Shown: one piece after another, positions 5,373 to 56,324 of the stretch | Layout: the number at the start of each line of letters is the position of its first letter | Numbering within the stretch: the first letter of the stretch is position 1 | Source: Anthoceros angustus | Lineage: Eukaryota > Plantae > Anthocerotophyta | Direction: 5' to 3' | Assembly: GCA_010909165.1 (NCBI GenBank) | Contig: MU008209.1 | Coordinates: 394,919-458,918 of the forward strand | DNA: 64,000 nt | Program-made: the position numbers and the translations under genes | The notes under the pieces: model-generated | What the model was told of the DNA's origin: nothing | The model's input: the letters and a program-made list of their open reading frames with translations, nothing else | Databases searched by the model: none

Positions 5373-5384
5373 TGGTATCAGAGC
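5373..5384 (+). promoter_or_regulatory. Primer binding site, initiator tRNA-Met type
   Basis: TGGTATCAGAGC immediately after the LTR. Confidence 0.9.
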
Positions 5385-15248: not shown

Positions 15249-15627
15249 GTGAAGCGTGAAAAGTTTGGGACTACCGGTGTCCCGAGTATGAGCTTGTCCC
15301 GGGGCAACTCCACCAATCTTAGCTGTGAGGACTATGGGATCGCCTTGTCCCATAGTGAGGCCCGCCCCTTGGTGGGACCGCCATGTCCCAAAGTTGGGAT
15401 GGCCCCTTGCCCTTGTGGATCGGGTAAGGTATCCGTCGCAGCTAAGGGGAACGCCATGTCCCATGGCCGGGACGATCTGGTTGCGCCCTTGCCTCCTCGT
15501 TACTAGCCCACTTATTGTCACTCCAGATTCGGACTCGTAGAATGGGGCCAAAGTTTCGGTCCGAGTATGAGTCCGCCACAAAGGGTCCCCTTGCAAAGAA
15601 CAAAATATGCTGGGAGAGCATCTGCTC
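15249..15627 (-). repeat. Family A repeat B2
   Basis: Same ends as 16410-16786 (GTGAAGCGTGAAAAGTTTGGG...GGGAGAGCATCTGC); the GC-rich middle is diverged. Confidence 0.85.
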
Positions 15628-16405: not shown

Positions 16406-16409
16406 GGCC

Positions 16410-16786
16410 GTGAAGCGTGAAAAGTTTGGGACTACCGGTGTCCCGAGTATGAGCTTGTCCCGGCAACTCCACCAATCTTAGCTGAGGACTATGGGGTGCC
16501 TTGTCCCATAGACAGCCTGCAGCCCCGGCTGGACTGCCATGTCCCAAAGCTGGGATGCCGGCAGCCCCGGGACCGCTGTCCTGGCTGTCGAGTCCGGCAG
16601 CCTGGCTATGGGCCATGTCCCATGGCGATAGTCCTGTTGCAGCTCCTTGCCTCCACATTAGCCCACTTATCGTCACTCCAGATTCGGACTCTGTAGCTGA
16701 ATGGGGCCAAAGTTTCGCACCAGTATGAGTCCGCCACAAAGGGTCCCCCTTGCAAAGAACAAAATATGCTGGGAGAGCATCTGCCC
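16410..16786 (-). repeat. Family A repeat B1
   Basis: Copy of B2, adjacent to the end of the PHD ORF. Minus-strand TGGGGTAGGG at its inner border (16784-16793). Confidence 0.85.
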
Positions 16787-16809
16787 TACCCCAGCCATTG
16801 AAGCTTGTG

Positions 16810-18010
16810 TCAGAATGTCGAGGCTGCCGGAGAGGCAGCACATAGTGGACAATACCACGCAGTTCCCGGCACCCTGAGAGAGGCGCAAAGCAAAATAGGT
16901 GGTACCACGTGCTGGTCGCACAGATCAGCGTGGTCGTCTCCTCCGCAACTGCATGGGTAATCACCGAGGTACCCAATCACGACAATGGTTGGATCCAGTT
17001 GGGCAAATGGCAAGGCGCACAATTTTTCATGTGATCCTTGGTGGTACGTCCATCTGATCCTTGTAGCACTAGCACACCATTGTCCTTGACCTCCGAACTC
17101 GCAACATGTCGACGTGGTGGTGTCAAGGGTGTCTCCCACTTGCTTCGCAAGCAAAACAAAGTCCCACCGAATTTCTTGAGCTTGGGTCTGAAGCTGCCGC
17201 TGCGAGTGTGGGCATATCTAAGGGTGTCCCGATGTTGGGCAATCCTCAAATTAGCCATGGCCATCGGCATGGCTTGTCAAACAGTGCACGCCCGACCGAT
17301 GACCGTTGCCCAAATTGCTGGATCATCCAGATCCACTACCTCATAGAGTTGCTTGGCAATGGAGCTAGGCGGCATGGGTTCCCTCCCAAACAGCAAGAAG
17401 TAGGGACTGAAATGTGCCAAGGAGGCATGCCGACTCACACGGTAGCCCATGGCGATGTAGGGAAGAGCCAAGTCCCACTCTGTCTTTGGCATTTGAAGGC
17501 AGAGCTTCCTTAGACCCTTCTTGATGGTCTGTACCATCCGTTCAGCCAGGCCATCAGCCTGAGGATGGTCTCGGCTGGTCCTACGATGGTCGATGAGCGC
17601 TGTGTCCAGCAGGTCTTGGAATTCCCCTCGAAATTCAGACCCCTGATCCGTCAAGCACTCGGAGCAGCTCCCAAAGCGACTCAACACATTGTGAAGAAAG
17701 GCCTGAGCGGTGCTTTTGGAGCTCTTGTCCGGCAGGGCCACCACCTCTACCCACTTGGAGAAGTGCTCCATCATGACAAGAATGTACACGTTCCCTCGTG
17801 GTGTCTTGGGTAGTTCACCCAACAAGTCACAAGACCACCTAAAGAACAGCCCCATGATAGGCAAAGGGTGTGAGGGTTACGGATGGTGAAGGAGGTCTTC
17901 ACTGTCAGCCCTTGCAACAAAGCCACCGCTTGACTTGGGCGTACATCCCTTGCCAATGGAAATGTGGGAGGAGCAAACTGTAAGTACGCTTGACTCCAAA
18001 ATGGCCTGTC
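16810..18010 (-). pseudogene. Family A integrase (H2C2 zinc finger, DDE core) with degenerate C-terminal PHD finger
   Basis: GHFGVKRT, WSCDL...EHFSKWVEV...TDQGSEF...PQADGLAERMVQTIK, and C-terminal YPC...WYCPLC. Confidence 0.9.
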
Positions 18011-19543
18011 GTGCAAAAACAGCTGGACATCGGATAGCACAACATTTCGCTCACGCCTTGTGCATGTGGTAACACCACTAATCGACTACAAACATTTGCA
18101 AAGAACGTGACATGTCATGATCATACTCAACTACGACCCGAATGCACATCCGGCCGAGAGCTGATTAGAAAAGAAAACAATAATCCTGCTAAATTCCCAT
18201 CAAAATGCCTCATTCAATCGCCTATCACCGATCAAACGCGTGAGTTTGAGAGTTCACAGAGCCGGACATAGTGCCGCAACCCAAAACCAAGTGTCGACTC
18301 GGACATCCGTGATCGAAATTCCCAAGCAAGCTTTCGGCATTCACTAATCTATAACGGCCAGAGCTCTCCTCCTCGCTCAAGAGACTCTCAAGACTATCCT
18401 AAGCCAAGCACGCTTGCCTCTTGTATCCGCGCCTAGCCTGCCGCCTCTCCGCCCCTCCCGCCATGCATCGCCTTCCATCCTTTTCCATGATTGCTTCCTG
18501 TCACTCTCACGCTCCCGCAATCTCCTCATGATCCGGCAAATCAATCGGTAATTTCACCACGACCTTCCCGAAAACTAATGGCTAACAATACATGACATTT
18601 CTAGATGTCAAGATATTACCGATATCCTCTCTCTATGTACATGGACTTGCCTCAACCAATGATCCCGACACGCGTGAAGATGACATATTGGTCGGCAAAA
18701 CAAATTGGACATCGGATAGCACAACATTTCCTCACTTTTGTTGTATGTGGTAACACCACTAATCGACTACAAACATTTGCAAACGTGACATGTCATGATC
18801 AACGGCTCAACTACGACCAATGCACATCCGGTGAGAGCTGATTAGAAAAAGAAAACAATAATCCTGCTAAATTCCCATCAAAATGCCTCATTCAATCGGT
18901 CTATCACCGATCAAACGCGTGAGTTTGAGAGTTCACAACAGAGCCGACAGTGCCGCAACCCAAAACCAAGTGTCGACTGACATCCGATCGAAATTCCCAA
19001 GCAAGCCATTCACTAATCTACAACGGCCAGAGCTGCCCCCTCCGCTCAAGAGACTCTCAAGACTATCCTAAGCCAAGCACGCTTGCCTCTTGTATCCGCG
19101 CCTAGTCGCCTCTCGCCGCCCCTCCCGCCATGCATCGCCTTCCATCCTTTTCCATGATTGCTTTCCTTGTCCTCACCAGCCTCACAATCTCCTTGTTATG
19201 ATCCAAAGAAATCAATCGGTAATTTCGCCACGACCTTCCGAAAACTAATGGCTAACAATACATGACATTTCTAGATGTCAAGATATTACCGATATCCTCT
19301 CTATGTACATGGACTTGCCTCAACCAATGATCCCGACACCGTGATTCCAAAGATGACACCGTGCAAAACAAATTGGACATCGGATAGCACAACATTTCGC
19401 TCACACAGGTATGTGGTAACACCACTAATCGACTACAAACATTTGCAAAGAACGTGACATGTCATGATCAACCAACTACGACCAATGCACATCCGTCGAG
19501 AGCTGATTAGAAAAAGAAAACAATAATCCGCTAAATTCCCATC
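18011..19543 (-). repeat. Family C 3' repeats: B3 18011-18201, A3 18202-18685, B2 18694-18879, A2 18880-19358, B1 19361-19543
   Basis: About 680-bp periodic sequence. A units run AAAATGCCTC...GATGACA and B units run G(T/G)GCAAAA...AAATTCCCATC. Confidence 0.9.
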
Positions 19544-19581
19544 CCCATAAGCCAAGAGAAGGCCAACACGAGAATGCTGGT

Positions 19582-20800
19582 TCAACTAGAACTGCCAGGA
19601 TCCCAAAGAGGTCTGGAGCTGGTCTCTCCATTACACTGAGCACAATACCACAATCCTTCAGGCACCTCTGTTAATGGCGGAACAAGGCAAAACAGATGAA
19701 AGCCTCCATTACAACCATCACAAAGCAACATGAGCTCAGGGTCATCCACCCGTTGACAAACTTGACATGGATAATCACTAGGTGGCACCCAATTCGCTGT
19801 GACAATCGTGGGATCCAGATTAGGTAGATGGCAAGGAGCACAATTGGTCATGTGGTCTTGTATAGTCCGCCATCGCTCCTCGAGCACCAACACACCTGGA
19901 TCAAGTTCCTTCACACGCAGTAATGCCGTTAGTAGAAGGTTCTAATGTGTCGCCAGCTTGTCGCTGAAGATAAACATAATCGCCAACATGGAACTTCCTC
20001 ATCTTAGGTCGAAATGCCCACTCGTGTAAGCATAACGTAAAGAGTCCCGATGTTGAGCAATTTTCACCGCCATCGCCATAGGCATGGCTCGCTAAACAAC
20101 ACCGCCTGCCGCCAACAACCTTAGCCCAAGTGGCTGGATCATCCAGCTGGACCACCTGGTTCATTTCCTTGGCAATGGCAACCGGCGGAACCGGATCTCG
20201 TCCAAACAAGAGGAAATACGGTGAAAAGTGAGCTAGAAGCGTGTTTGCTCATACGCACCATAGCCACATATGGCAAAGCCAAATCACTGTCTTAGACATC
20301 TTGAGCAACAACTTACGAGCCCTTGTTTGATGGTCCGAACAAGTCGCTCACCAAACCGCCGCCTTGAGGATGGTCTCGCTAGTGCGTGATCGATGAATGC
20401 AAGTCTCAGATCTTGGAATTCTCCCGAATGTGCCTTGATCCGTCAAACACTGCATGACTACCAAAGCGATCGAGAACATGCAAAGAAGGCCCGAGAAGTG
20501 CTTCGGATGACTTGTCCTAGAGCCACAATTTCGCCCACTTGGAAAAATGTTCCACCATCACCATCACATACACGCTACGAGGCGCCCGGCAAATCTCCTA
20601 TAAGATCACAAGACCATCGTAAAACAAACCCATAATGGGTAATGGCGATGGCTTGATGTTAAGACTTCACTCACACCGCTCGCAAAGACGCCACCACGCC
20701 ACGCACTTGAGCATACATCCCAAACCAATGGAAATGAGGAGACAATAAACTATATGTTCGCTTGACCCCAAAGTGACCCATGTCGAATGAGCACGCATGA
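19582..20800 (-). pseudogene. Family C integrase with intact C4-H-C3 PHD finger
   Basis: CQVCQRVDDPELMLLCDGCNGGFHLFCLVPPLTEVPEGLWYCAQC at about 19636-19770; DMGHFGVKR and FGRDPVPP integrase motifs upstream. Confidence 0.9.
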
Positions 20801-20959
20801 CCAAAGCTATTCATGTGGTGTGCACCAGCACGAGCCCGTAGACAAGGTGCGGATCAAATAGCCATCTTTCCAACGATACCGAGCTCCGTCAGATCCGATC
20901 TCGCTGAAGTGTGTGCAATCAGCAGAAACAATCCACTTTGAAGAAACCGTAAGATGATC

Positions 20960-22200
20960 ATCTTCCCATATGTCGCGATGTGCCCGAAATCGCAATGGTT
21001 CTCCATGTCCCACACATAGATTCCGCAAACATGTTGTCAGTAAGAAACTTGACCCGTGATCTCATGGTCCCGCTTAGCACACGCCTCATCCTCATCACGT
21101 AGTCGGGATGTCGAAAGCACATCCGCATTCTCGTGTGTGATGCCGTGGCGAACGACTTGGAAGTCATAATCCGCAATGTCATTGCCCACCTTGCGACCTT
21201 GCCACCGAGCTTAGTATTCGTCATAAGCCAACGTAAAGGCGATGGTCACCACCAAAGTAAATGGCCGACCATACAGATAAGGTCCGAAATGGCAAATGCA
21301 TCATGCCAAACACTCCTTCATAGCTAGGATAATTGCTCTCACCTTGTTGCTACGTGCATAAGCGATAACACGCTCATGTCCTTCTTCGTCGCCAGTAAGC
21401 CGGCTCCAATACCTAATCGACCTAATCCGTATGAAGCACAAATGGCTTCTCGAAGCCGGGCCATCACAGCGCCATCACTTTCTTCAACAATTCAAATGCT
21501 GCTAAGTCCGTCCAATCCCAAATCACGCCCGCGCAGAGGTTGTTAAGTGGTTTAGCAAGACGCTAAAATCTTGAATGTAAATCCGTAGTAGTTACACAAT
21601 CCCAAATAGGAGCGCACTGACACACCGAGAATGTGTACCTCTAACACCTTGAACCTTTGCAGGTGGCATGATACCGTTAGGCACAATCCTATGTCCCAAA
21701 TAGGCGACAGATCCATGCCCACACACTTAGGATGGCATTTGAGTCCCGCCTATGGAGCTGCAAAATAGATCCTCTAAATGCCTCAAATGAGCCTCAAAAT
21801 CCTTCGTGCACGAGCACATCATCAATATAGCAAAGCGATGAGCAGCCCGGACAATACCTTGTCCATGATACAGAAATGTAACAGTGCATTTCAAACCCAA
21901 ACGGCATAAACAACCATTCCCATAGCCGCGAGCCATGAAATGTCTTTTTATGTCTTCTTCAACCATTGGCACCGGTTGAATCCTTGCCGCAGGTATAGAA
22001 CAGAGAAGAATGCTGACTGTCCGATGCTATCGAATAGCTCCTCCGTGTGGGCATCGGATAACGATCTTGAGCCGCACGCATTGATCGGTCGATAATCACC
22101 ACACATGCGTCGTCTATAAACCCCGATCGCCCTTCTTAGGAGGAAGAAGCACCGTGCATAAGTGGATGGTCGAATCAATCTCGCCTCAGCCTCGCTTATC
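20960..22200 (-). pseudogene. Family C RT and RNase H, heavily frameshifted
   Basis: RMCGDYRPIN, LRQGFN, and TNTKLGGKVARWAM motifs. Confidence 0.85.
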
Positions 22201-22599
22201 GACTATTTCCCATTCGCAGATCGAGCTCGTAACGACGCCGGTAGATGGGCTCATTAGTTGTCACCGCACTCAACTTCATAACGCAAGTACCAAGGTCCTT
22301 CATCGAAAACGCAAAACAATCTTGATATGTTATCATAAGCAATCCGCTGATCATTTGTCAATCGGACCCATCTTCCACCGGAAATCAGCCACTCTTAGCC
22401 TCGATTGCTTCGCCGATAACGCAACGAGTCGCCAGATCATCACCGTCGGAAACGATGATCTCTAAAATGCATACTCCCCGCCTTCCGAAAAGGCATGAAA
22501 AGCTCGAAAAGGCGATGAACAAAGATCCGATGACACAAGCGCGATCGCCAATCGACAAAGCCGCAAAACCAGGACCAAAGAAAAGTTGAAAGCCAAACA

Positions 22600-23500
22600 G
22601 ATGTCGACGAGTGTCACAAAGATGTAAATCCATGGCACGACCCAGCAAAGACATCACGAGCAATAGAAATGCCGAGCGGCAGATCGTGAGTCGCAAACCC
22701 CATAATGCTCCCGCCTCGCCAGCGGGTTCCTCCCAACGCCGAGTCTCGAATGCAAGAATAATCCCGGCCTTCCACGATACGCATAAGACCGAAACTAACA
22801 AGTGTAGGCAAGGTACGTCGCGGATAACCCACCTCATTGGTAGCAAACCATGGGGCTTTCTCCGGTCTGAATCGTCGAGGAGAGTGATAAACTTCGAGCA
22901 CATCCTGTAATTGACGTTCAGCAGGACGAATAGTATGATGTAAAGACAATACAAGGATCACAACGAGCCCGCTTTGTCCAAAACTGCGAAGACGATGAGC
23001 ATAATCACGCACATGCATCAAAACCGAGGCGGGCCCAAAACATGCTGCACCAAATTGGCGTCATGGCGCACAGACAGCCGAGAATCTAGATGTGCAGGAG
23101 TGTTTTCCAGAGTGTAAACCACCGACGGATTACACTGCTGAAACTCATGCTGCAGCTGCACGAGAGGCAAGAACAACCCAGATCGCGAATCCTGTAGGCC
23201 ATCCCCAAATCCAGCTTGGGAGAACCCCTGGCATTCCCAACCCGCAACCACAAGGTCCACACGTCCTAAAGCTTGAACATGGGAGGATTGAATCAACAAG
23301 ATGTCTTGTGGCAGGGTAGTAAAAGCACAATTGCAAGCGGACTGATTAAATTGCTGGGGAAAACGGATGCACAATCGCCGCAAACGATGTGCGAATTTGA
23401 CGAGCCACTAAGCGCTTATCACAGTAATAACTATGAATACGCAATCCGCACGCAATGGCCTCCAAGCTGCAAATACCTCCAAACAACTCCACCAATACAT
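22600..23500 (-). pseudogene. Family C DNMT3-like C5 cytosine methyltransferase domain
   Basis: Motif I VELFGGI (23469-23492); motif IV VDLVVAGWECQGFSQAG..GLQDSRSGLF (about 23170-23265); motif VI LENT (about 23100); AHRLR..WT (about 22980-23010); IMGF and LLGRAMD (about 22625-22720). Confidence 0.85.
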
Positions 23501-23899
23501 GCCTCGATGAAAGGCCACGAAATAGTCACACGTGTGAAAGCAACTCCTGTGCAATCTGCCCAAAGGTGCGAGGCCAGCCCAGCCACGATACCGAACGCAA
23601 ATTGACATGATGTTGAGCCTCAACCGACAACGAGGGTGACCGACAATCATCTCATCAACAAGAGCACAAGCCTCCACCATCGAGTCGTGCGCCACTTCAT
23701 CGATAGTCTCATCAACTCGAAAACAACCATTGCTCATGCTGATCATCCTTGACCAACCGAGGAATAAACTGCACCATACAGACATGGCGACCAGCCAGCG
23801 ACACTTCCATGTCATCATTGCGGTGATGCAAATCAAGTGGAATGTAGGCCAACCGCTTGCCTCCTTGCTGCCAATCAATTATGTAAAAAGCTTGCTCTG

Positions 23900-24435
23900 T
23901 CCAATTATCAATACTGACCCCAGGTGGAAACAAAAACTCCTGGCACAAGAGTACATCATAATTGGTAGCAGAAACCGCATAACGAACTCGAGAGTCACAT
24001 CGGCGCACGGTCAAGAGCAATAGACATTGGAAACACTGTCTCACCCTAGATCGGCTCCACAGCTCCCATTGCTGTACGGATGTTCCAGGGAGAGTTGCGT
24101 AATGCTGATCCCATCAACTGCAATCGAGTGGCCAGAGTCTGACCAATAATAACTGGCTGAGCACCAGTATCGAACAACACCATACGAGGTGCAACACCAT
24201 TGATCGTCACATGACCAGCGGTATTGTTCACCAATGCATGATTGACCCGAACTTGCAGGCGATTTGTTGGTTGCACCAACGGATTGCCTTGAGTGGCAAG
24301 GGCCAAGTGTGAAACCATCACCGGTTTTCCAGCAGCAAGTGGCTCAATCCAATCCAGCTCACTGGTAGCTAGAGCATCAGCTAGTGCTGTCTCACCAGTA
24401 CTCGGCTTGTCTAACTCGACTATCACGGCGTACAC
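23900..24435 (-). pseudogene. Family C aspartic protease
   Basis: VLFDTGAQPVIIG. Confidence 0.85.
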
Positions 24436-24999
24436 TGAACCAAATGATGTAAAGGAAGCAACCTGCGGGCCCCTATTCCCACCTCCTCAAGAGAAAATAA
24501 AGGTACATGCACCGCTTGTAGCAATCCCTCCCACGTCATGGAAGACAAACGAATAGGTTCACCTCCTTGATCTCTCACGACTCACGCCCGATATGGCAAA
24601 TGGTCTCGAACCACGCAATGGCGGAATGACGCCAAAGGTACAATGGCAAACGACTTAGGCATGATCGCCCTAGCTTGTCGCAACGATACTTTTGCCGTGG
24701 GAGCCGAACCTCCGCCGTCATGCTGGCCACTCGACCTAACCAAGAGCAAGGTAAGTCTTCTAGCATACTAGATGTGTGCACAACGTGCTCGCCTGTAATT
24801 TTCTTCGCCTCACCATCTTGTGAGCCATGCAAACATGGTAAGGATCCCCATAATCTTCTCCCACACGTACATGCTCATCAGGAGAGTCACAAACCATAAC
24901 TCCTGCAAGTTTATCTTCAGACACCACGAGCGAAGCTCCTCCAGCAGGCTTGACTGCCAAACTAGCAGTAAGTGTACCCAACTGCGTTGTAAGAGCAGC

Positions 25000-26500
25000 C
25001 ACAGCAGTTTCCAGTGCGGTTACCTTACTAGCATTGGCCACAGTCTTCTGCTTAAACTTCTCCCGCTTTAATTTGCTCTTGAAACAGTCCCCGCAGATGT
25101 CCCCATTATAGTAGGAGACCCAATGGCAATCATGGATGCTGAAATTTCACCATCTCCACCCGCCTTTTGCACTCGACGCCAGAAACTGAAACAGATCGTC
25201 ACAACATGACCGTGACAAGATGTGTAATACAATGACTCCATCACGCATTTGCATGGAGACAATGTTCGGTGCTTCCACATCTGTTACACAACGGTGAAAA
25301 GTGAAAGCAGGTTCGCTTATCGGTTTAACCTGTGTAGGCTTTACCACTCCACTGCTGCCGACTCCCGTCGAGTTACTTTTGCTAGCGGCAAACATGTGCT
25401 GATAATGCGAGTACGCCTTCGAGTGTTTGTAAGCATGTCGAGAATGCTACCCTTTCGCCTCGCTCAAACACTGCTCAAGAGTGTATTGATCTCCGTACTT
25501 GTCAACAAGTGAAGTGAACAATTGGAAATGAAATAATGGCTCCGTCTCCAAAGCACTAAGAAACTTCGAGCACTGATCAATCAACATGCCAAGACTTCCT
25601 TAGCTTCAGAGACGACGGAAAAGCCATTTGAATTTTCCTTTCGTGTAAACGCAGACAACTATAATCTTCTCTGGGTCTTGAAAGGAAAAGCCTTCTCAAG
25701 AATGATAAAGAATTCCTCCACCGGATTAGCGTAAGCTGGAACCTCAATGTATTCTTCTATACCCGCCGTGGCCGCAGCACGCTCTTGGGAGGTCATACTG
25801 ATCACTCCTGGAGGTTTCACATTAGGTGACACAGTACTAGCAGCGATGGCGGCTTGATGAGCTGACACCGCTAATGCATGCAAATTATTATACGCCACCT
25901 GCAAGGCTTGCTGATAAGCAGGATTAGGAGTCACAGATGTAGCCAGCAATGCAGCTGCATGTGTCTCATATAGATCGAGAGCCTCATCTGCCATGTAACC
26001 AGGCAGCTGCTCAAACATGTAACGATCTGAAAAGCTATGCCATGCTTGAATTTCACACGGCTAGTAAGGAAGTTGAAATAGAGCTGAAATCACGAAAGTC
26101 TGCGTGCAGTCTACCAGAAAACTTATCCGATTTGGCTGGAAGAGAACCAAGACGCCATGATTTGAGTCACTCGAAGAACCGAGCTCGACCGCTAGTCGTG
26201 ATCTCACCAATGGTGACCAGCCAACCAGATACGGCCGTTGAAGATGTCTCTTCAGAACAAGCGCATCTCCCGCTTGCGGGTCTTCCACGGATGCTCACTC
26301 ACGTAATCGATGATTTTGCTCTTTTTGGAGGTGTGCGAGCCACATGCTTGAGCACCCTCCTTGAACGTAATTGGTGGTGCCTCACCACTCAGCTCATCCG
26401 GCGATCCGTCATGCATGTAAGAACAATGATCGAAACCGATTTCATCCAACAACTTGATTACCACATTCTGTTTCACGACATCGAATCCGGACCCTAACTC
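25000..26500 (-). pseudogene. Family C gag-like region with zinc knuckles
   Basis: MFEQLPGYMADEALDLYE, homologous to family A MFEQLSSYLADEALDLYE; Cys/His knuckles at about 25100-25300. Confidence 0.75.
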
Positions 26501-26628
26501 AAGGCTTTCTCAAGAACCGTAACAAGGTCCTCGCAGCTTGACATCAAGGTGATGACATATGCAACTAGGAACATAGCTCAAGAACCCTAGTTCTTTCTCA
26601 AGCACGACATCACACGCGCCGTCGGAGC

Positions 26629-26640
26629 AGTCTTGAGAGT
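26629..26640 (-). promoter_or_regulatory. Family C candidate self-priming primer binding site
   Basis: AGTCTTGAGAGT directly abuts A1 and is the exact reverse complement of 26828-26839. Confidence 0.7.
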
Positions 26641-27148
26641 AAAATGCCTCATTCAATCAGCCTATCACCGATCAAACGCGGTGAGTTTGAGAGTTCACAA
26701 TGTGAGCCAAACATAGTGCCGCAACCCAAAACCAAGTGTCGACTCGGACATCCGCATCGAAATTCCCAAGCAAGCTTCGGCATTCACTACATAGCGCCGG
26801 AGCTCGTCCTCCCTCCGGCTCAAAGAGACTCTCAAGACTATCCTAAGCCAAGCACGCTTGCCTCTTGTATCCCGCGCCTAGTCGCTGCCGCTCTCGTCCT
26901 CCTCCCTCCCGCCATGCATCGCCTTCCATCCTTTTCCATGATTGCGTTTCCGGTCTTGTCACTCTCACCAGCTCCCGCGAATCTCCTTGTTATGATCCAA
27001 AATCAACTGGTAATCACCACGACCTTCACGAAAACTAATGGCTAACAATACATGACATTTCTAGATGTCAAGATATTACCGATATCCTCTCTATGTACAT
27101 GGACTTGCCTCAACCAATGATCCCGACACCGTGATTCCAAAGATGACA
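26641..27148 (-). repeat. Family C repeat A1
   Basis: Matches 18880-19358 and starts TGTCATC on the minus strand. No B sequence on either side. Confidence 0.9.
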
Positions 27149-28700
27149 GCCCATGTCAGCTGGCACTCGATTTAATCAGCTCCCTATCGTGGTGGTGGCA
27201 CCAATCGCTCCAGCCCATTGGTCGCCTCCTCAAAGAATGCCCATCACGCCATTGATACTTGGCCGAATTCTTTCTTGCTCGTGCTCAATGGCTGATCCAA
27301 ATTGTCCTGTTTGGACAAATAGGAGAGTTTCGGAGTCTTCCTAGATGTCCTTGGACCTCCTGTCCCCAGCATATGTGCTCAATGCTAAGGACGCCCCATA
27401 TTGGATTGTCCCATACGGGATACCACCCAGCTTGTCAAAGCCACCATCGCAGCCACCGACACATGCTGCAGATCTCCATCATCTTGGTCCTGTCGGCTTC
27501 TGTAACATCTTCGCAACAGCACTGGGATTCCGAGAGAGAGTGTCCGCTTTGGTGTGTGACTCGCTGGTGCACCACTTGAAATTCATAGTCCTGCAAGATC
27601 ATGGCCCACCTTGCAAGCTTCCCACTCAACTTGGTGTTGGTCATCAGCCATTTGAGGGGCTGATGGTCGTGACCAGCGTGAAGGGCTTGCCATACTGTGT
27701 AGGCCTAAATGACAAACCGCCCATACAGCCGCTAGACACTCCCTTGGTAGCTACTGTAGTTAGCTTCACGATTGTTGCTGCGTGAAGCATACGCAACCAC
27801 CCGCTCCTTTCCATCTTCATCTTGTTGGGCTAGCACAGCCCCTAGGCCCAAGATGCTCCAATCCGTATGTACCACAAACGGCTTGGAGAAGTCAGGTCTG
27901 GCCATGACAGGAGCTTCCGTCAAGCTCAGTTTCAGCGTGTCGAAAGCTTGCTGGGTCTTCTCTGTCCAGGCCCAAACAACATCCTTCCGCAGCAAGTCAT
28001 TCAGCGGCTTGGCAATTCGGCTGAAGTCCCGAATGTATACTCGGTAATAGTTGCATAGGCCGAGGAAAGCTCGCAGGGCAGAGAGGTTTGTGGGCTCTCG
28101 CACCTGCAAGATGGCCTGTACCTTGGCAGCATGAGGCATCGCGGCACAACCCTATGACCAAGGTATGCCACGGTGTCCATGCCAAATTCACACTTGGCGG
28201 GTGACATGTCAATCTTCGCAATCTCTTGAACAGATCTTCCAGGTGCACCAAATGAGACTCAAAGTCCTCTGTGGACCAGGACATCATCAATGTAGCACAT
28301 GAGGTTCGAACGCAAGTACTATGTCCATTACGCTGGAAAGTCACCGGCGTTCTTGAAGCCAAAGGGCATCACCAGCCATTCCACAGCTGCTGAGAGCCGT
28401 GGAAGGCTGTCTTCTTGATGTCCTCTTCAGCAACAGGCACTGGTTGAAGCCTTGACGCAAATCCAAAATCGAGAAGTAGGTAGACTTGCCAATGTTGTCG
28501 AAGATCTCCTCCGTTGGCATGGGGTACCGATCTGGCTGTCACCGAGTTGATAGGACGGTAGTCTCCGCACATCCTCTTCTCTGTCCACATCCGTTGTGTC
28601 CTTCTTGGGAGGCATCACCGTGGCAGATAGTCGGAGCTAGAGGGACGAATGAGCCCGGCTTCAAGCAACTCTTGACAGTGCATCCACCATGTCCCACTCT
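27149..28700 (-). pseudogene. Family A RT, RNase H and start of integrase
   Basis: RMCGDYRPINSVT, YIDD, LRAFLGLCNYYR, VHTDWSILGLGAVLAQ...VVAYASR. Confidence 0.9.
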
Positions 28701-29139
28701 GAGCCGTAGCGCCTCAGATAGGCTCCTTGCTGGTCGATTGATGCGGAAGGTGGTCACATTGCATCGCTTCACCCCGCATGGAGAAGGCAAACAGCTGGTA
28801 TTGGAGCAAGGGCATGTATCTGCTGCCCTTGTGAGTTGGGGCCCCATGACCCAATCGAAAGTCTCAGACATAAGGCTTGGGTGCTGTGAATTGGGAGTCC
28901 CTACTAATCTCCATAGGATCCCCATACTGGACGGTCCCATACTCGGAGCATTGCCATGTCCACGAGCTTGATGCTGAGAATGCAGGGATGGCCATGCCAC
29001 CTCCCCCCGCATCAAGCCAATATGACCGTGGTGTATCCGGGAAGGGCAAATGGATGTGCACAAGAAGATGTGGGAAAAGGACCTCGGTGGGAGCTCCGGG
29101 AATGCCAACAGCTGAAAGGCCAGACATATGCTGATGAGC

Positions 29140-30150
29140 CAAGTGAGTGACAGATCCATAGCGCCCAAGGCGGCATGACCTGGTAACTTGGGAGGCAGCG
29201 GCATGGGTGTGGAAACCCATGACGCTCCGCTCCTCCACATTGGGCTCCTCCCACCGGTGGGTGTTGCTGTTGAACAGCGAGCTTGTCCCCTGTAGGCATA
29301 GGAGCCGTGAAAGCTCACTAGGGTGGGAAGGGTCCGCTGCCCCGGTGGGAGCTCAAGGTGCACGCTGCCACTGTCTGGGATGCCAAGGGTCCAACACATT
29401 GGAGAGCTTGAGAGTGGGGTCCCGAGTAGTGCGGGTGACCACCAACTCTAGCAAAGGTTGAGGCGTTGGTCCAATAGTGCAGGCGATGAGCAAACCGCCA
29501 ACTGGACTCCATGAGCAAGGGCGTGCCCACATGCTGGATGATGGCCATGTCTTGGCGAACTTGCAAGTGTCCCGCGGTGTTCTCCAGCAAGCGCAGTGGG
29601 CTGGTGAACATCCACCAAGATGCGTGAAGGTCCCAAAACAAGGCGGTTCGTGGATCTTGTAATCCTCCCCGTGGCGGCTTGAGAAAATCCGGCATTCCCA
29701 TCCGCAATCAAGTGGATGGGGCCAATGTGGCGGGCCCAATATGGATGTCTTGGGGCTGAGGGTGCAGATAGCTGGCAAGTAGTGAAGGGAATGCACTCCA
29801 AGCAGCGTGCAGCTTGGGACAATGGTCCAATAAATGTAACGTGACCAAGATGCCATTGAGGGGTCCCCAGTGAGTGTCCCGACTGCTCGTCCCATGTCTT
29901 GACCCACCACGTCTGTTCTCCATGTGCCCAGTGAAGGCTCGCTGCGAATGTGGCGGGGCGCGCTTGTGATGCTGATGATGTCTTGGGCCTGCCGGCGGGC
30001 CCCATGGTAGAGAATGGCGTGGAATAGTGAAGAATCGCAGCCGGTGCCATAGAATGCATTGCGCCTTGGGACATGTTCACGACCAAGATGCCATTCAGCA
30101 AAAGAGCCTCAGCTACCAGCAGTGCAAATGCCCCAAATGCAAAGTAATGC
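29140..30150 (-). pseudogene. Family A DNMT3-like C5 cytosine methyltransferase domain
   Basis: FG.ICT..EALLLNGILV (about 30080-30145); IA.WEC..FSQA..GGLQDPRTALFWDL (about 29640-29710); LLENT; AHRL..WTN; VMGFHTH; AALGAMDL. Confidence 0.8.
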
Positions 30151-30376
30151 GTGGCACACGATGATCTTGGCTCACCGTGGTGGAGGATGCCTGTCCGCCC
30201 AAGGGGGAGTGCTGAAGCTGCAGAGCTTGCTGCACTCGTGGAAGAGCTTGCTGAACCAGGTCGGACACTTTGAATGATGGTGGAGTGTCTCCTAGGCAGG
30301 CTGCTGTGACCAAATGGTCGGCCTCGTGATCTGGATCCAAGTCGGCAAGCTCCAGCATGTCACTCAAATGCTGGCC

Positions 30377-31573
30377 GTGGGAGCACCTCGGGGACAGCCT
30401 GAATGGTCGCCATAAGGACTGGAGTAGCTAGGACAGTGGCGACCTCGGTGTCCAATCCGCCATGCAGATTCAAGGGAAAGTGCGCCACTTGCTGACCTCC
30501 ACTACGCCAATCGGGGCGATAGTGAGCTTGCTCTGTCCAATTGTCCACGCTGATGCCGGGTGGAAACAAAAACTCCTGTCCGAGAAGGACATCGTAGTTA
30601 GCAGCTGTCGTGACAAGGCAATGAATGGCCAATGTCATGGCAGCGGCTATCCCGGGCTTGAGCGTGATGGCGCACACAGGTTCCACAGCGCCAGAGGCTG
30701 TCCTGATGTTCCAGGGTGAATGGCGGAGTGCCGTTCCCTGCAAGTTCAACCTGGCGGCGAGAGCCTTGCCAATGATCACGGGCTGTGCCCCCGTGTCCAA
30801 GAGCACAAGCTTGGGAGCATAGCCATTCACCGTGACATGGCCTTCCCTATTGTCCACCATGGCATTGCTCACTCGCACATTCATGCGATTGGTGGGCTGA
30901 ATGCGGGTGCTCCCGAGTACTCCGCGCTGGGACGCAGGCGCATCGCCTCCAAGTGGCTGGCCCTCCTCATGGCTGTGGGAGCACCTCGGGACAGCCTGAA
31001 TGGTCGCCATAAGGACTGGAGTAGCTAGGATGGGCGACCGTATCCAATCCGCCATGCATTCAAGGGAAAGTGCCACTCGACCTCCACTACGCCAATCGGG
31101 GCGATAGTGAGCTTGCTCTGTCCAATTGTCCACGCTGATGCCGGGTGGAAACAAAAACTCCTGTCCGAGAAGGACATCGTAGTTAGCAGCTGTCGTGACA
31201 AGGCAATGAATGGCCAATGTCATGGCAGCGACTGTCCCGGGCTTGAGCGTGATGGCGTGGTCAGCCTCCACACACAGGTTCCACAGCCAGAGGCTGTCCG
31301 ATGTTCCAGGGTGAATGGCGGAGTGCCGTTCCTCGCAAGTTCAACCGGCGGCGAGCCTTGCCAATGATCACGGGTGCCCCGTGTCCAAGAGCACAAGCTT
31401 GGGAGCATAGCCATTCACCGTGACATGGCCTTCCCTATTGTCCACCATGGCATTGCTCACTCGCACATTCATGCGATTGGTGGGCTGAATGCGGGGTGCT
31501 CCCGAGTACTCCGCGCGCGCTGGGACGCATAGGCGCGCATCTGCCCTCCAAGTGGCTGGCCCTCCTCATGGCT
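30377..31573 (-). pseudogene. Family A aspartic protease, present as two tandem copies of about 600 bp
   Basis: LLDTGAQPVIIG region at 30377-30974 and again at 30975-31573, with GTGGG at the junctions. Confidence 0.85.
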
Positions 31574-31669
31574 GTGGGTGGCCTGCCCTGTCACTCCCAC
31601 CATCGTAACATGGTCGATGGTGGTGGGCAATACCCAGCCTGAAACGTCAGGTAAGGCTGCCCATGTGGG

Positions 31670-32045
31670 ATCCACCGGCAGTCCCGGCTGTCCCGAGTAT
31701 GGGACTGCGGAGGCCCGGTGATGGGCTTCTCCTCGCAGTCCTTGGCATGGAGCTGAAGGTGCCTGGCATTGGGACTCGCCTGTCAGTCCCAGGTGTGGGA
31801 CTGTTGAGAGCCAAGGCTGAGATTCCCCCGGCAGTCCCGAGTATGGGACTGCGGAGTCTCGGTGTTGAGCCTCCACCGGCTGTCCCGAGTATGGGACTGG
31901 AGAATCCCAATGCTGGGGCCCTCCTGGCAGTTCTGAACATGGAGCTGTGGTGTGCCGCTGTTGAGGTGTCCCCAGCAGTCCCATGTATGGGACTGGAGTG
32001 TCCCGGCGCTGGGACTCTCCCGGCAGTCCCGAGTATGGGATAGCC
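31670..32045 (-). repeat. About 33-bp coding tandem repeat in the gag-PR linker
   Basis: Recurring GTCCCGAGTATGGGACTG, translating as repeated VPYSGLPGE-like units. Confidence 0.75.
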
Positions 32046-32599
32046 GCGGAAGCTTCAGCTGTTGCCAAGCCCAGCACCTGCTGTAACTGAGCACGCCCAA
32101 CTCCCATGTCCTGGAGGGAGATCAAAGGAGTCTCCAACACCTTGCGCATGATCAAGGTCGGGGTGTACGCCGGTGGTAGATGCGCGCGCACATTCGGCGG
32201 TGTCCCATGACTTGAATGTGGAGGCTGCTCTCTCGGCGCTCCATCCAGGTGATCCTGTCCCCGAACAGGGATGGCCACGCCAGGCGGCAGTGGCGCAAAG
32301 GATCTAGGCATAGTAGCCCTCGCCCTCTGTTGCCGAGTAAGGGGATCAGCGTCCCTAGCTGCAACATCCAAATGTGCCTTCTTCAAGTCACATCCTACCC
32401 ATGTGGCGGGTAGGATCAATCGGCGTGGAATCCACAAGACAATGGATGACAGCCTCATGTGGCAGGCCGTAATCCTCCTCTCCTCCTCACGGGTGCCAAA
32501 ATGGCGCCCGCGGGCTTGGAGGTGGAGGTGCCGCCACCGGCAGCCTGGGCTCCTAGCTGAGTAAGTGCTGCCACCGCTGCCTCCAATGCGGCAATCTTG

Positions 32600-33910
32600 T
32601 CAGTTAGCCGCTCCTTGGCCTTGGCCCCATTCCGCGTGATCGGCCCTTCGACGCATTTGAACGCGGCCGCTGGGAGTCCCGCTGAAGGTGTGGACCGTCC
32701 TTGCCGATATCGCGCCCGGATGCTTTTGAAATGCATCAAATGGCCAGTCTTGTTGCAATGGGAACAATGCAAACCTTCCACAGAAGCTTGCACGCCGGAG
32801 CCAAATGATCCGGGCTGCCACAGCGATTGCATAGCACTGTGGAGGTGGCTGCGGCTGCTGACTTGATTGGCCTGGCCTGAATGGGCTTGGAAACCCCTGA
32901 TCCCACGCCTCCAGATGTGTTCCCCTTGCTGGAAAACATGCTTTGATAGTGCGTGAAGGCCTTGGAGTGTCGAGAAGCATACGCTGAAAACGCGATTTCC
33001 TTGCGCTCCGCTTCTTCATGGACTGTTCGGTGTAGCTGTCCCCATACTTGTCCACCAAAGAGGTGACAAGTTGAAAGTGGAACAATGGATCTCCCTCCAA
33101 CGCCATAAGAAACTTCTCGGCTGCCTCTTGGTCAACATCCCAGTGCCTTCTCGCAGCTTCTGGAGCCTGCGAAAGGTCATCTGGACAGTCTCACCCTTCT
33201 TGCGAGCGAAACTGGCCAGCTCAGCTATTTTCTCAGGAGTCTTGAGCGGAAACGCCTTCTCGAGGATGGCCATGAACTCCTCCACCGGATTGAGGTACTT
33301 GGGAGTTTGGATGAACTCCGGGACCCCAATCGTGGCTGCCACCCTCTCAGCAGCAGTCAGACTCACCACGGATGGTGGCTGAACGGTGGCTGCGACTGTC
33401 CCAGCAGCAATCTTAGCCTGGTGGGCACTCACAGCCGTGGCCAACTTGCCATTGTAGGCAAGCTGCAGCGCTCCTTGAAACTGGGGATTCACCGTGGAGA
33501 TGGTAGAAGACAAATCAGCTTGATGTGCCTCATACAGATCCAGCGCCTCGTCCGCCAAGTAGCTTGAAAGCTGTTCAAACATGTACTGGTGATTGTAAGC
33601 GCCGCCATGCTTGAACCTGACCCGGCTGATGATAGCGTTGAGGGACAGCCGAAAGTCTCGCAGCGATTGAGTGCCAGGCCTCCGGAAAATCTGTCCCGCC
33701 TGTACGAGGGTCCTCCACCTTCCATGGTGTCCGAATCCTCCGAAAGATCAGCTGATTCTCGATCTTGTCTATCAAATTGGGACAAGTTTGTCCCAATTGA
33801 TCTCCCGGCAAGGAGTCGGATGATTCTTTGCCGGTTGAGATCTGCAAAATGGAGACCAGCTGGTTGCTGTCCAAGGTGGCAGGTGGCGTGGCCTGCAAAC
33901 CGCTTGCCAA
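32600..33910 (-). pseudogene. Family A gag-like region with two CCHC knuckles
   Basis: ORFs 33575..33910 and 33016..33582; CNRCGSPDH...C and CSHCNKTGH. Confidence 0.8.
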
Positions 33911-34224
33911 CTCCTCCTGTGCTTGCTGGTGTTGAAAAGAACGCCTTCGCTGTACTCCGCCGGAGTGGTCCGCTGGATGTCCCGTGTCCTCAAGCGGTAA
34001 CGGGGACTGATCTCATGTCCCTCGGGGTGCATCACCCATGTGACTAACGCATAAGATCAGCAACACTCCCTTAAATGTGAAAGAACAACGAAATCCTCCA
34101 CTCACTCCACTCCTGTCGCCAAGCCCGGTGTGAGCGCGCCTCCTAGCAATTCTGGCAGCAAAATGGATTACCCCTACGCTTGGATCACTCCAGCAGCCCT
34201 GGTGTAGGGTAGGGATTGTCCTAA

Positions 34225-34520
34225 CAGTCCCAGCAATGGGACTGGACAGTCCACGAAGTGGGACTGTCCCAGCAGTCCCGGCGCTGGGTCGGGACTGTCC
34301 CTACAGTCCCAGCAATGGGACTGGACAGTCCACGAAGTGGGACTGTCCCAGCAGTCCCGGCGCTGGGTCGGGACTGTCCCTACAGTCCCAGCAATAGGAC
34401 TGGACAGCCCACGAGGTGGGACTGTCCCAGCAGTCCCAGCGCTGTGTAGGGACTGTCCCTTCAGTCCCAGCAATGGGGCTGGACAGCCCACAAAGTGGGA
34501 CTGTCCCAACAGTCCCGGCT
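34225..34520. repeat. 79-bp tandem array (about 4 units) in the family A leader
   Basis: Units start at 34225, 34304, 34383 and 34462, rich in GGGACTGTCCC near-palindromes. Confidence 0.9.
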
Positions 34521-35296
34521 CTCCTCCCAACAATCCTTGAAATGGGACTGTTCCCACAGCCCTTGGAATTAGGACTGTACAGTCCCTAAAATGGGACTGT
34601 CTAGGGGTCAGCACCCACGCCTCAGCCTCTGAGAAAGGTCAGCAACGACAAACGGCACTCACACATCCGAAATTGAAACGTGAGTGTCAAATAAACGTGA
34701 TCCTCCCCTTCCACTTTCTGACCGCGCTGAGCCGGACACCTTGATGGTGGGATCTGTTCTCCTCTCCAGCACGCTGTCACTGTAAGAAACCAGCAGAAGT
34801 GAAAGGGCCGCTCACCAAATCCCAAAATCCCCAAAATCAGAAATGTTGGCAAAGTTGCAATCCGCCTGCTCCTGATCTGGGAATCAAACCAAAGTATCAG
34901 ACCATGCTGTAGCCCGCCTGAAATGGAGATCTTGAGTGGCAAGGTCTGTCCTCCCTCTCCCACAAGCTCTGCTGCAAAGATCGAAAAGGGATGAGAAAAG
35001 CGCTCGCTAGATCTTGAATTCCCAGCTGTATTTGGGAAAGCCCATGGATCAGGCCTGGATCTGGCCTCCTCTCTAGCACGCCATCACTGTAAGGAGCCAG
35101 CAAAGGTGAAGGAATGCCCTGAAGACCTCGAAATCCCAGCTGAATCTGGGAACGCCCACGGGCTGAGCCTGGATTGGGCCACAGCTGAAGGTGTAATCGC
35201 CCAGCTGTGATCCAGGCTCCAAAATGGCGTCGCCCCAGCTAGAGGAGGCGCCTCAAATGTCGCCACTCCGCCTTGGAGTGTCGCCCTTGAAGATTG

Positions 35297-35308
35297 AGTC
35301 TTCGAAAT
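35297..35308 (-). promoter_or_regulatory. Family A candidate self-priming primer binding site
   Basis: AGTCTTCGAAAT directly abuts A1 and is the exact reverse complement of 35513-35524. Confidence 0.7.
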
Positions 35309-36160
35309 AAAGGGATCCGCTGCGCAATGGCAGGAATCACGAGATTTCTTGAAGATTTCTTGGCCAGCCCAGTTTGCGCTGGCTGGGAGCCTGTAAATCG
35401 AGCCTTGGCGCCTTGTAGGGAAGCACGCTGAGCAAAACACAGATCTAATCGATCTTGGATTTCGATTGCAAGGGTTCACAAAGTGCTTTCCTCCTAACCG
35501 CGCTCCTGCACGATTTCGAAGACTACCCTCTGTTCCTTGCCCCACGGTCCTCATTCCCGCGCTCGCCATCATCTCCACGCTCCGCCCAGCTCGATTCCCA
35601 GCTGATGTTTGCGCCATGATGCGAAAGCAACCCTCACGCTTGGTGGTGCTCCTCCCACGTTGATCAGGTGCCTTGTTTGGGTTTGGGTCCAGTTTGGTTT
35701 CACACCTAAACTAAGTGGCTTTTTCTAGCCTACCTAGTTATCCGTTCATAACGGATCTATTTCCTATAACTAGTATTTAAAGGAAATGAATCCTTGGACT
35801 ATGGGCCAATCAAAATAAAGGATATGTTTTCATGTCCTTGGTTAATGAAAATGCCTAACCAAACGTAGTATAAAAGCAAGCATACATCGAGTTCACATTC
35901 TTTGCATGCGTACCTTAGTTCTTGTGTCTTGACGTTGGGCTGGTGGCTGCGACAGTCCCGGCAGTCCCGGCTGTGGGACTGCCATGTCCCATGGCTGGGA
36001 CAGTCCCGGCTGTCCCGGGTGTGGGACTGCCACGTCCCATGGCTGGGACAGTCCCGGCTATCCCGGCTGTGGGACTACCATGTCCCATGGCTGGGACAGT
36101 CCCGGCTGTCCCGGCTGTGGGACTGCCATGTCCCATGTCTAGGACGGTCTTGGCAACCTC
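35309..36160 (-). repeat. Family A repeat A1
   Basis: Matches 15628-16405; no B sequence adjacent. Confidence 0.9.
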
Positions 36161-39100
36161 CTGACACCTCGTTTCTATCCTCCTTGGCTGGTTGCGGCTG
36201 GCTTACCTCAAGTCTTGTTACGCTGCTTCGCCCCTCTCCACCGCTGGCCGTCACCGAACAAGACCAAGGCCCCTGCCCCGGCCCTTCTTCTTCCTCTCCT
36301 TCCGATCTCCTCGAGGTCCGTCCAATTGTCGTGGGTGACGCGAAACCTCCAGAGCCTTGAGGAGCTCAGCGTGGTAGTAGGCAAAGTCCGAGTCGACTTG
36401 TGGCTGCTCCACATGCGCCCGGAGCACCCGATACTCCTTCGCCATAGGCTCAGTGCTGCCGGCCTGCTTGCCGGGCCCCGCTCCATCGCTGTGTTCGTAC
36501 TGAGCCAGCAGAATCTCGAGGCCACGAGGGAGGCCTCACTTACTGCAGCCGATGCCGCCTCCGCCTCCGCCTCCGCCTCCGCTTCCTCCGCCTCCACCGC
36601 CTCCCCGCCATGGCGCAGCCCCTCCGCCTTCCTCAAGGGACGGCTTCTTTTGCTGGCCCAGGCCCCGCTCCCCATTCATCCTAGCTCAAGCTCCGCCATC
36701 TCTTCCCAGTGGGTCCTAAGAACTCGCCGATTTCTTGCTTCGGCCTGTGTCCTTCTCCATTTCGCAACGCCCGCCTCCTTACTCCATCGCCTTACCTCTC
36801 CGCCTCCAACAGAGCTAGAGTCGCTCTATCTCCCGCTGTGAGCCGATCACGCATCAAGAGCCCTGCTCATTGTATCTTGGAGCAGCTCCAAGGTCTGCGG
36901 TCCTCCATCTCCGCCGCTTCCTCGCCACAAGAATTGAGCCCGGAGATTTTCCATCTCCTGGCCTCCTTCTCTTCTACACTACCGGTGGCTCGCCCATCGC
37001 CACGTGCTCGCCGTTAGCAGCCGCCCTCGCTGCCTCCTCCACCGGTTCCGATCCCGCTGTAATGGTCCCATGGCGGTCATGCCCGCCTCCGCGCCTCACC
37101 CTGAGCTTCCTGTGCTTGGTGTTGCTCTGCCGAGCCGCCTCGGCCAGTCCCGAGCTCCGCTTGCCTTCTAAGCCTCCAACTCCCTTGCGCCGCTTCTTGC
37201 CGCTCAGAGGTCCTTTGCGGGCTTGGCCTCTGCTACCGCCACCGCAGTGAAGGACCTTGGTCCGGTTCAGAGACCTCGCCTGCCTCGACGCTTCTTCGAT
37301 CCGGCGAGGGACTCCGCCTTCTTCCCCGGGCCGCCGCCTCCACCGCCTCCCCGAGAAGCACCATGCACCTCCTAGTGGCCTCCACTGGTTTTCTCTGCCG
37401 TCCGTGAGAGACCCCAAAGCATACCGTCCATGATGGTTGCCAAGACTGTCTCCTCCACGGCCGCATGAGTGAGGCCCTCAAGAAGTCCGGCGTTTGATCT
37501 CCGGTCCCCGGACCGCCATCTGCATCCGAGCGAGCGGACTTGGCTCTCCGGACTGATCAGACCTCAGTCCCGAGTGCCTTGGTCCGATCCTTCCACCTCC
37601 TTGGCCTGCTTTGGCCACTAACTCTCCGCCCGCCTGCTTGGGGCTCGGCGAGGGGGTCCGGAGCGGCTTCTCTTCTGCCGGGACAGACTGCTCGGATGTG
37701 GTTCTGCTGCCCTCGCACCTTGGCGTCTCGCCTCCGCTCTCATCGCTTCCTCCGCCTCCTGCTACTCCGTGGTAGGCGGAGGAACTGTCGCTTGGCGCTT
37801 CTCCAGGAGCCGCTTTTCCGCCTCTTGACGACTCGCCTCCCCTGCTAGGGCTGGTGGGTTGCTAGGCGGTGGGCGCCGCGCCAGCCTCCCTCCGTAGGTG
37901 CTCCTCCATCGGGGCCTCGCTCGGAACGAAGGGAGGAGGGAATATCCTCCCATACCTCCCCTGGGCGAGGGGGTCCGTCGATCGAATGGAATCCGGGATC
38001 CTTCCCAATTGTCCTCCCTCCTGCTTTGGCCTTAGGAGGTCGGACCTCCGCCTTGCGCCTTCGCTCCTTCCCCTCGCCTCCTGAGTAGGGCCGCCACCCT
38101 TCCCGAGCGCCTGCTCTCTTCTCCTCCTTCAGAGGTTGAGGTGTCCCCATACATGGATGAGGAAGGGTGGCAGTGACGGAGGAGGCTTTTCACTCCACAG
38201 CCTGCCTCCGGTTGATCCGGCGAAGATGATACGCCCCGTCTCCTCTTCCTCGTCAGAGGCGTGCAAACACAGAAGATTGTCACCAAGGTGATCCACCTTG
38301 GTGAGCATGTTCCAATGGACAATGACCTTAGCCACGCCTCACCCGCCTATCCAGCAGTCCGACATCGCCCAGCTGCTTGGACGACTGCTGCGCCCCTCGC
38401 CGCCCGCCGCTTCCACCTTTCCTCACCTTGGGGCCCGAACTCGCCCCAATTTTCTTCCACCGGGCGGTAAATCGCCTCGGGACCTCCACGGTCCACCTCC
38501 GGGATCCTCCTCAAGCTCTTGAGCGAACCTCCTTGTTAGCAATCGCCAAGATCTTCTTGGCATTCTCGACGAGCGCCGGACATCAAACATCCGGACCACG
38601 CTGAAGATGTCCAAGTGCCATTGCTCCACGAGCTCCTCCGCTTCCTCCGCCAGCCCGGTTGGGGTATCGCTTGGACGATGTTGCCCACCAAGCGCCTGTG
38701 GCTCCCATACCTCCGCCGCCTTCTTGGGTCCCATGGGGCTTTCCTCGCCATTTGGAAATTGTGCTACTCTCCGCCGCCTGCCGCGTTGGCCACTCCAACC
38801 ACGAAGGTGAGCCGGTGCGAGAGTGCTGGCGCTTGAAAGACAACACCAGAGAGCTTGGTGTGGAGCGCGAGACTGAAAACCGCCACGAGGTCGTGAGAAA
38901 GAATGGCTTCTCCTCCGCGACGCCTAAGTAGTCATGCGGCGTCTCTCTCGCTGCCCAGAATCGCCGTGAGGTCGCATGGCTTACTCCCCGCCTTACGCCC
39001 GCTTACTCGCCTTACGCCACAGTTTAGCCTTTACGCCACTGACTGGAGCGTGAATACCGCTTATAACGCCATCGGCAGCCCCTACGGCCCCGGTCTCACG

Positions 39101-56315: not shown

Positions 56316-56324
56316 TCTTGCTTA

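Follow-up and report, generated by a model that had tools for sequence, protein, structure and literature searches.

The stretch of DNA analysed here, referred to as the window, comprises 64,000 nucleotides of contig MU008209.1 of Anthoceros angustus (Anthocerotophyta). Self-blast, alignments and direct reading revealed two minus-strand retrotransposons within it, families A and C, one nested in the other. Family C interrupts the family A integrase in its zinc-finger part, at 27148/18007, and joining of the flanks ...GACATGGGC and GGCCATTTTGGAGTC restores D-M-G-H-F-G-V, which matches ...FDMGHFGVKRT in family C. Each element begins with a repeat termed A1, further copies of which are found at its other end; the A copies are mutually 87-89% alike. 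In both elements A1 is followed at once by 12 nt that have their exact complement within A1, and on this basis both probably prime reverse transcription with the 5' end of their own RNA, in the manner of Tf1 and without a host tRNA. The features in question are as follows.

26641-27148, minus strand: family C repeat A1, starting TGTCATC and ending GAGGCATTTT (self-blast, alignment)
26828-26839, minus strand: family C, AGTCTTGAGAGT, putative 5'-terminal 12 nt of the RNA, with a T before it, 309 nt into A1
26629-26640, minus strand: family C, predicted self-priming primer-binding site, ACTCTCAAGACT, from the first base after A1
35309-36166, minus strand: family A repeat A1, starting TGTCAGG and ending GGATCCCTTT, with 48-nt tandem repeats in its 5' part
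35513-35524, minus strand: family A, AGTCTTCGAAAT, putative 5'-terminal 12 nt of the RNA, with a T before it
35297-35308, minus strand: family A, predicted self-priming primer-binding site, ATTTCGAAGACT, from the first base after A1

The 12-mer pairs were read by eye and then located by script. On the minus strand AGTCTTGAGAGT (26839 to 26828) and ACTCTCAAGACT (26640 to 26629) are exact reverse complements, as are AGTCTTCGAAAT (35524 to 35513) and ATTTCGAAGACT (35308 to 35297). The end of A1 was defined as the last base common to A1 and the other copies of A, and alignments on this definition gave GAGGCATTTT/ACTCTCAAGACT in family C and GGATCCCTTT/ATTTCGAAGACT in family A. The upstream site of family C recurs with 12/12 identity in A2 (19053-19064) and A3 (18384-18395), and the A2 copy of the family A site (15823-15833) carries a 1-nt deletion. 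No tRNA-type site was found after A1, where the sequence opens with ACTCTC... and ATTTCG... and not with TGG, and the window contains no tRNA gene. The initial annotation of these letters had claimed this lack of a tRNA-type site together with the exact complementarity of the 12 nt adjoining A1 to a site inside A, and both were borne out in both families by reading and script. So were its further observations that complementarity ends at exactly 12 nt (the neighbouring bases proved to be unpaired), that the families differ in a compensatory way (at 4 paired positions, between elements with gag pieces of 61% identity) and that the upstream sites begin T/AGT.

An inverted pair of such length is by itself not rare, since the window holds 14 pairs of at least 11 nt at a spacing of 60-600 nt, including 5 of at least 12 nt. 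A complement of the A1-abutting 12-mer inside shuffled A1 was obtained in 1 of 20000 shuffles for family C and in 0 of 20000 for family A, the analytic expectations being 3e-5 and 5e-5, respectively, and the positional coincidence for both families jointly amounts to about 1e-9. Both window strands were also scanned for Y/AGTYTT 12-mers with a complement, allowing at most 2 mismatches, 60-450 nt downstream. The only exact matches were the two pairs, that of family C appearing also as its plus-strand mirror reading, and a single further match with 2 mismatches was returned at 35134.

Relatives of the elements were sought with phmmer, using the family A gag piece against 1.84 billion representatives, which resulted in 23 matches; the contigs of ten were looked up. 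Against proteins of 134-425 aa the 243-aa gag piece gave no match at E<=0.001. Three contigs from two sources (L004, L006 and L008) were long enough for repeat A, and the contigs of L001-L003, L005 and L009-L012 (Logan) and of L007 (JGI) were too short, L005 offering ambiguous 9-10-nt pairs only.

L004: NCBI assembly GCA_965154635.1, 34-Mb contig, 20.9 kb examined; pair AGTCTTTCTTCAGT, 9240-9253 with 9391-9404, 14 nt exact
L006: JGI metagenome 3300009709; pair AGTTTTTCTAAAATT, 15 nt with one G:U; repeats A1 8388-8697, B1 from 16585, A2 16716-17027, B2 from 17107
L008: JGI metagenome 3300009709, the same as L006; pair AGTTTTTCTAGAATT, 769-783 with 893-907, 15 nt exact

The order gag-protease-DNMT-integrase is common to the three by tblastn, with a PHD finger also in L006, and in each of them a pair is located upstream of gag; shuffling of those regions gave a pair of 14 or 15 nt in 0 of 300 cases. 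L006, the A of which starts TGTCATG and the B of which ends TCACGACA, could be delimited from its own A1 and A2: the site starts at the end of A and the pairing extends 3 nt into A. Two of the short Logan contigs of related elements, L001 (1-45) and L003 (40-70), begin just before ...TTTTCAACAACT, which would suit an RNA starting AGTTGTTGAAAA, also an AGT start, the repeat itself being off both contigs. Repeat B of L006 (16625-16650 and 17147-17172) has TTTTAGTCTTTTTG, which resembles the start-site motif TTTTAGTTTTTC of its repeat A.

Covariation across related families had been named beforehand as a check on the pairing. As aligning the five start-to-site stretches with MAFFT opened gaps inside the arms, a pair table was instead built by script, by position from both outer ends, for the five elements from three sources. 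The pairing is kept: at positions 1-12 all 60 of 60 cells are paired, 59 as Watson-Crick pairs and 1 as G:U, and two-sided changes are seen at 7 of the 12 positions, namely 4 and 7-12. L006 and L008 differ at a single position, which is compensated (A:U vs G:C). The outer end of the pairing is pyrimidine/AGT in all five elements and the inner end is variable, the pairing spanning 12, 12, 14, 15 and 15 nt. In minimum-free-energy folds of the start-to-site RNA the full duplex closes in 4 of 5 elements, and in L006 14 of 15 pairs form.

The outer end of the pairing in turn bears on where transcription begins. Reasoning from the retroviral model, the RNA would have to begin at this outer end, because otherwise plus-strand strong-stop DNA would copy unpaired primer bases. 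Transcripts of the two elements are predicted to start inside repeat A at the conserved pyrimidine/AGT, at 26839 and 35524, where the outer end also offers a pyrimidine-purine step. In two of the relatives a TATA box is situated at -32 from Y/AGT, with the sequence TATAAAAG in L008, where it is canonical, and TGTATAAAG in L006.

The following course of events is proposed. The genomic RNA would start inside repeat A at the positions given, and its first 12 nt would fold back on the complementary 12 nt directly after A1. The RNase H of the element would cut the RNA at the inner end of the duplex, and the released 12-nt 5' fragment would then prime minus-strand DNA synthesis across the final ~190-205 nt of A, and the DNA so made would transfer to the corresponding stretch in A2. 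Like the transcription start, cleavage by RNase H and use of the fragment as a primer are steps that we infer.

Several observations weigh against this reading. The whole leader folds no better than its shuffles (z -1.6 and -0.8), and fold support is therefore confined to the duplex alone and does not extend to a larger Tf1-like leader structure. Upstream of the predicted start, family C has a weak TATA-like ATACAAG at about -31 and family A no recognisable TATA-like stretch. Families A and C are both decayed, with many stops in the list of open reading frames (ORFs). From L004 and L008 a single copy of A was available, so that abutment to the end of A is seen in families A, C and L006; a second A copy of L004 was not found in the 20.9 kb, in which nested insertions are present. 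Finally, the contigs of X1, the one sequencing run identified (Logan contigs, share 0.29, the RNA nature of which is a guess), were compared with 25000-28000 at a likeness of 80, and within this stretch none covered any of the repeat or primer site of family C. Three contigs did match there, two of them being relatives of the family A RNase H region (27191-28000) and the third a 47-nt piece at 25471-25517, inside family C. The contigs over 27191-28000, of depth 30-60, are ~90-93% like the RNase H region of family A. One of them runs past 27191 with related sequence, indicating a related copy, and departs from the window sequence 43 nt before the junction with family C is reached.

Covariation is proof that the pairing is conserved but not of what it is used for, and the duplex could accordingly be a conserved leader stem for packaging, dimerisation, translational control or 5'-end protection, with another, unrecognised primer at work. 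Leaders closed by a stem are known from other retroelements. We nevertheless consider this unlikely, as the downstream arm lies at the first base after A1, where the primer site must be, in three families, as no alternative candidate site and no TGG-type site was found, and as the outer end is a fixed Y/AGT, in L006 and L008 32 nt after a TATA box, as self-priming requires. An action of the inverted repeat at the DNA stage, as a hairpin or annealing site in circle formation or in the resolution of the permuted repeats, draws some appeal from the unusual step needed to get from B.A repeats to integrated A-internal-B-A-B. The junctions that need explanation (A/B and B/A) are however located elsewhere, the G:U of L006, acceptable in RNA, is a mismatch at the DNA level, and we know of no mechanism that uses such a DNA-stage pair, which leaves this role very unlikely.

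The site ends in six bases (AAGACT or AAAACT) that hardly vary from family to family, as might be expected if a host RNA, be it a tRNA fragment or another small RNA, primed on the 12-mer and the match to the repeat were secondary. The remaining 6-9 bases nevertheless vary by family and always match the element's own repeat, and a host primer cannot follow each family's differing site; a CCA-complementary TGG is also missing, so that a host primer appears highly improbable. Least probable of all is that the pairs arose by chance or neutrally, as the consequence of a small inverted duplication. The number of pairs of at least 12 nt in the window speaks for chance, whereas the joint positional coincidence of the two families speaks against it, as does the maintenance of pairing through two-sided changes in elements from three sources. 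Self-priming is thus the preferred reading, being supported by the exact pairs, their abutment on A1, the compensatory changes, the fixed outer end and the TATA box at -32 in two relatives.

The coding content of the two elements places them among known kinds. All features below are on the minus strand.

19585-26060: family C degenerate coding region, with many stops and frameshifts (Pfam, tblastn, ORF list)
25662-26060: family C gag
24049-24486: family C aspartyl protease (Pfam)
23021-23407: family C DNMT, C5 DNA methylase PF00145, 1.8e-6
20674-20853: family C integrase zinc finger (Pfam)
19585-19941: family C PHD finger, PF00628, 1.3e-13
27149-35296: family A coding region, 5' part, with gag 33019-33747, protease 30363-31340 and RNase H 27438-28151
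16797-18006: family A coding region, 3' part, with DDE integrase core 17280-17876, rve 2.8e-14
17908-18006 of piece 17908-18048: family A integrase zinc finger, Integrase_H2C2 6.7e-9

An aspartyl protease was identified by Pfam in both families, as was the family A RNase H, which is of the kind linked to reverse transcriptase (RT). Matches to DNMT were obtained by tblastn at 23027-23498 and 63280-63717, and the DNMT stretch of family A is too decayed to score. By their domains the elements are degenerate Ty3/gypsy-type retrotransposons of the DNMT3-carrying kind. The features of Gypsy-DNMT3 elements that are present comprise the aspartyl protease, RT/RNase H and DDE integrase, a C5 cytosine methyltransferase within Pol, and repeats in the arrangement A-coding-B-A-B, to which family C adds one A-B unit.

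The repeats and the sequences that border them are listed next, for L006 in the coordinates of its own contig.

18007-19543, minus strand: family C 3' block B1-A2-B2-A3-B3, the end of B3 being GCACGACA
19361-19543, 18686-18879 and 18007-18201, minus strand: family C B1, B2 and B3
18880-19358 and 18202-18685, minus strand: family C A2 and A3
19544-19553, minus strand: family C G-rich tract GGCTTATGGG, adjoining the start of B1, a candidate polypurine tract for priming of the plus strand
15245-16784, minus strand: family A 3' repeat block, with B1 16406-16784, A2 15628-16405 and B2 15245-15625/7
16785-16796, minus strand: family A G-rich tract GGCTGGGGTAGG, adjoining B1
About 16545-16552: L006 G-rich tract
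36167-36170 (5' copy) and 15241-15244 (3' copy), minus strand: family A 4-bp target-site duplication GAGG
27149-27152 and 18003-18006: family C 4-bp duplication GGGC/GGCC, one base off
About 8384-8387 and 17221-17224: L006 4-bp duplication TTGT

Family C thus has one A-B unit more (B-A-B-A-B) than family A and L006 (B-A-B), which could stem from a three-repeat intermediate or from later unequal crossing-over. In all families the element ends are TGTCA...CACGACA, B2 of family A ending CTTCACGACA, and the 4-bp duplications flank the start of A and the end of B. These duplications fit insertion by a DDE integrase despite the DIRS-like repeats.

A G-rich tract adjoins the start of B1 in three families (GGCTTATGGG/GATGGG in family C, GGCTGGGGTAGG/GCAGATGC in family A and TCTGGGGGGGG/ATACATGAG in L006). 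With the primer site at the end of A and the G-rich tract at the start of B, the repeat of reverse transcription would be B+A and not A; by the usual rules the linear DNA would run from the start of B to the end of A with B+A repeats. The A2/B2 junction is the end of A joined to the start of B, exactly so in family C and in L006; in family A it shows one substitution when B is taken to start GRGCAGATGC, or two extra bases (GA) when the start is taken as GCAGATGC. GACA/TGTC at B/A is a palindrome. It is possible, and we suggest it tentatively, that the ends made by reverse transcription and those used by the integrase are circularly permuted, and that, on the simplest reading, an obligate circular (two-repeat) or concatemeric DNA is opened by the integrase at the internal palindrome-like B/A. 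The imperfection of the internal B/A junctions limits this reading. At 19359-19362, 18686-18692, 16403-16408 and, in L006, about 16690-16716, they depart from the expected CACGACA/TGTCA by 2-3 odd bases or small deletions. To our knowledge such a circular or concatemeric route with opening by the integrase is not established for any LTR (long terminal repeat) retrotransposon.

Further repeats were observed in the window. Tandem repeats with units of 48 and 79 nt and a high content of GGGAC/GTCCC are found at 35944-36183, 34190-34519 and 31684-32053, that is in the 5' part of family A repeat A and within its coding region; L004 has 45-nt tandem repeats directly upstream of its A (8537-8843). 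A further family-A-like copy on the plus strand, at 62187-64000, carries protease and DNMT (63280-63717) and continues beyond the window end; its 5' repeat was looked for and not found. A third A-like repeat, at 55900-56760 on the minus strand, is ~80% like the 5' part of family A. Its similarity ends near 56290, before the site is reached, so that the repeat (56290-56760) is uninformative on the pairing; it was probably cut by another insertion. An AT-richer repeat block occupies 4767-14612, with units at 4767-5903, 6253-7563 and 8913-10192 that are repeated at 10183-14612, and contains one repeat pair that is 100% identical over 812 nt.

Compared by published description, the elements (with gag, protease, DNMT, RT/RNase H, DDE integrase and PHD finger) match KnitGypsy-Dnmt3 of Klebsormidium nitens, which shares the gypsy domain set, a DNMT3-type methyltransferase inside Pol and the order A-coding-B-A-B; its figure legend gives the repeats as those of DIRS and the domains as those of Gypsy (de Mendoza 2018, PMC5890265). 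A primer-binding site or priming goes unmentioned in that paper, and no mention of priming in Gypsy-DNMT3 elements was found in the literature, be it de Mendoza 2018 or later papers. Elements of the DIRS order (DIRS1, Ngaro, PAT-like) are alike in their order A1-internal-B1-A2-B2 and in an internal B/A junction that equals the element ends joined, but have a tyrosine recombinase and no target duplication, whereas the present elements have a DDE integrase (rve) and 4-bp duplications. Membership of DIRS was rejected on account of the rve integrase and the target-site duplications. SymbioDIRS-Dnmt3 of dinoflagellates was likewise dropped, having a tyrosine recombinase where an rve integrase is found here. 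For DIRS-1 the primer is stated to be unknown in PMC7192593.

If the permuted ends are real, they would account for the origin of DIRS-like split repeats in elements that lack a tyrosine recombinase. Primer site, G-rich tract and target duplications together separate the ends made by reverse transcription from the integrated ends, and the presence of DIRS-like repeats in an element with a DDE integrase becomes a problem accessible to experiment. Self-priming would in turn provide the DNMT3-carrying gypsy elements of streptophytes with a concrete, testable primer mechanism that is independent of tRNA, and the pairing fixes the predicted transcription start within repeat A for promoter mapping. 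LTR finders based on tRNA sites will miss or misjudge such elements. Host defence aimed at tRNA-type primer sites would find no target in a self-primed element.

Among streptophyte LTR elements, self-priming in the absence of a tRNA site has been predicted for the Tcn1 clade, the chromoviruses of moss and club-moss, and for TAR of Ty1/copia, in the account of Neumann et al. (2019, PMC6317226). The present elements resemble these in all three respects, but Tcn1 and TAR are ordinary LTR elements, with chromodomains in Tcn1 and of the copia type in TAR. Self-primed reverse transcription itself is known from Tf1/Tf2 of Schizosaccharomyces pombe and from the Tf1/sushi group (PMC7175516, in its summary of Levin 1995 and Lin and Levin 1997). 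The chromodomain at the integrase C-terminus that marks the chromoviruses Tf1/sushi and Tcn1 is absent here, a PHD finger standing in its place in family C and L006. The analogy to Tf1 drawn in the initial annotation holds on all points that sequence can address, namely the position of the site, the lack of a tRNA site, the conserved pairing and the fixed outer end. As in Tf1, a site immediately behind the 5' repeat would be complementary to the opening bases of the element's own RNA, and RNase H is predicted to cut the pairing and so yield a primer. Self-priming of the Tf1 type is thus a known mechanism and the DNMT3-carrying gypsy element a known kind; no earlier description of their combination was found in the literature. 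The two systems differ in that the pairing comprises 11 nt in Tf1 and 12-15 nt here, in that a DNMT and a terminal PHD finger are found in place of the chromodomain, and in that two plain LTRs there correspond to A-internal-B-A-B here.

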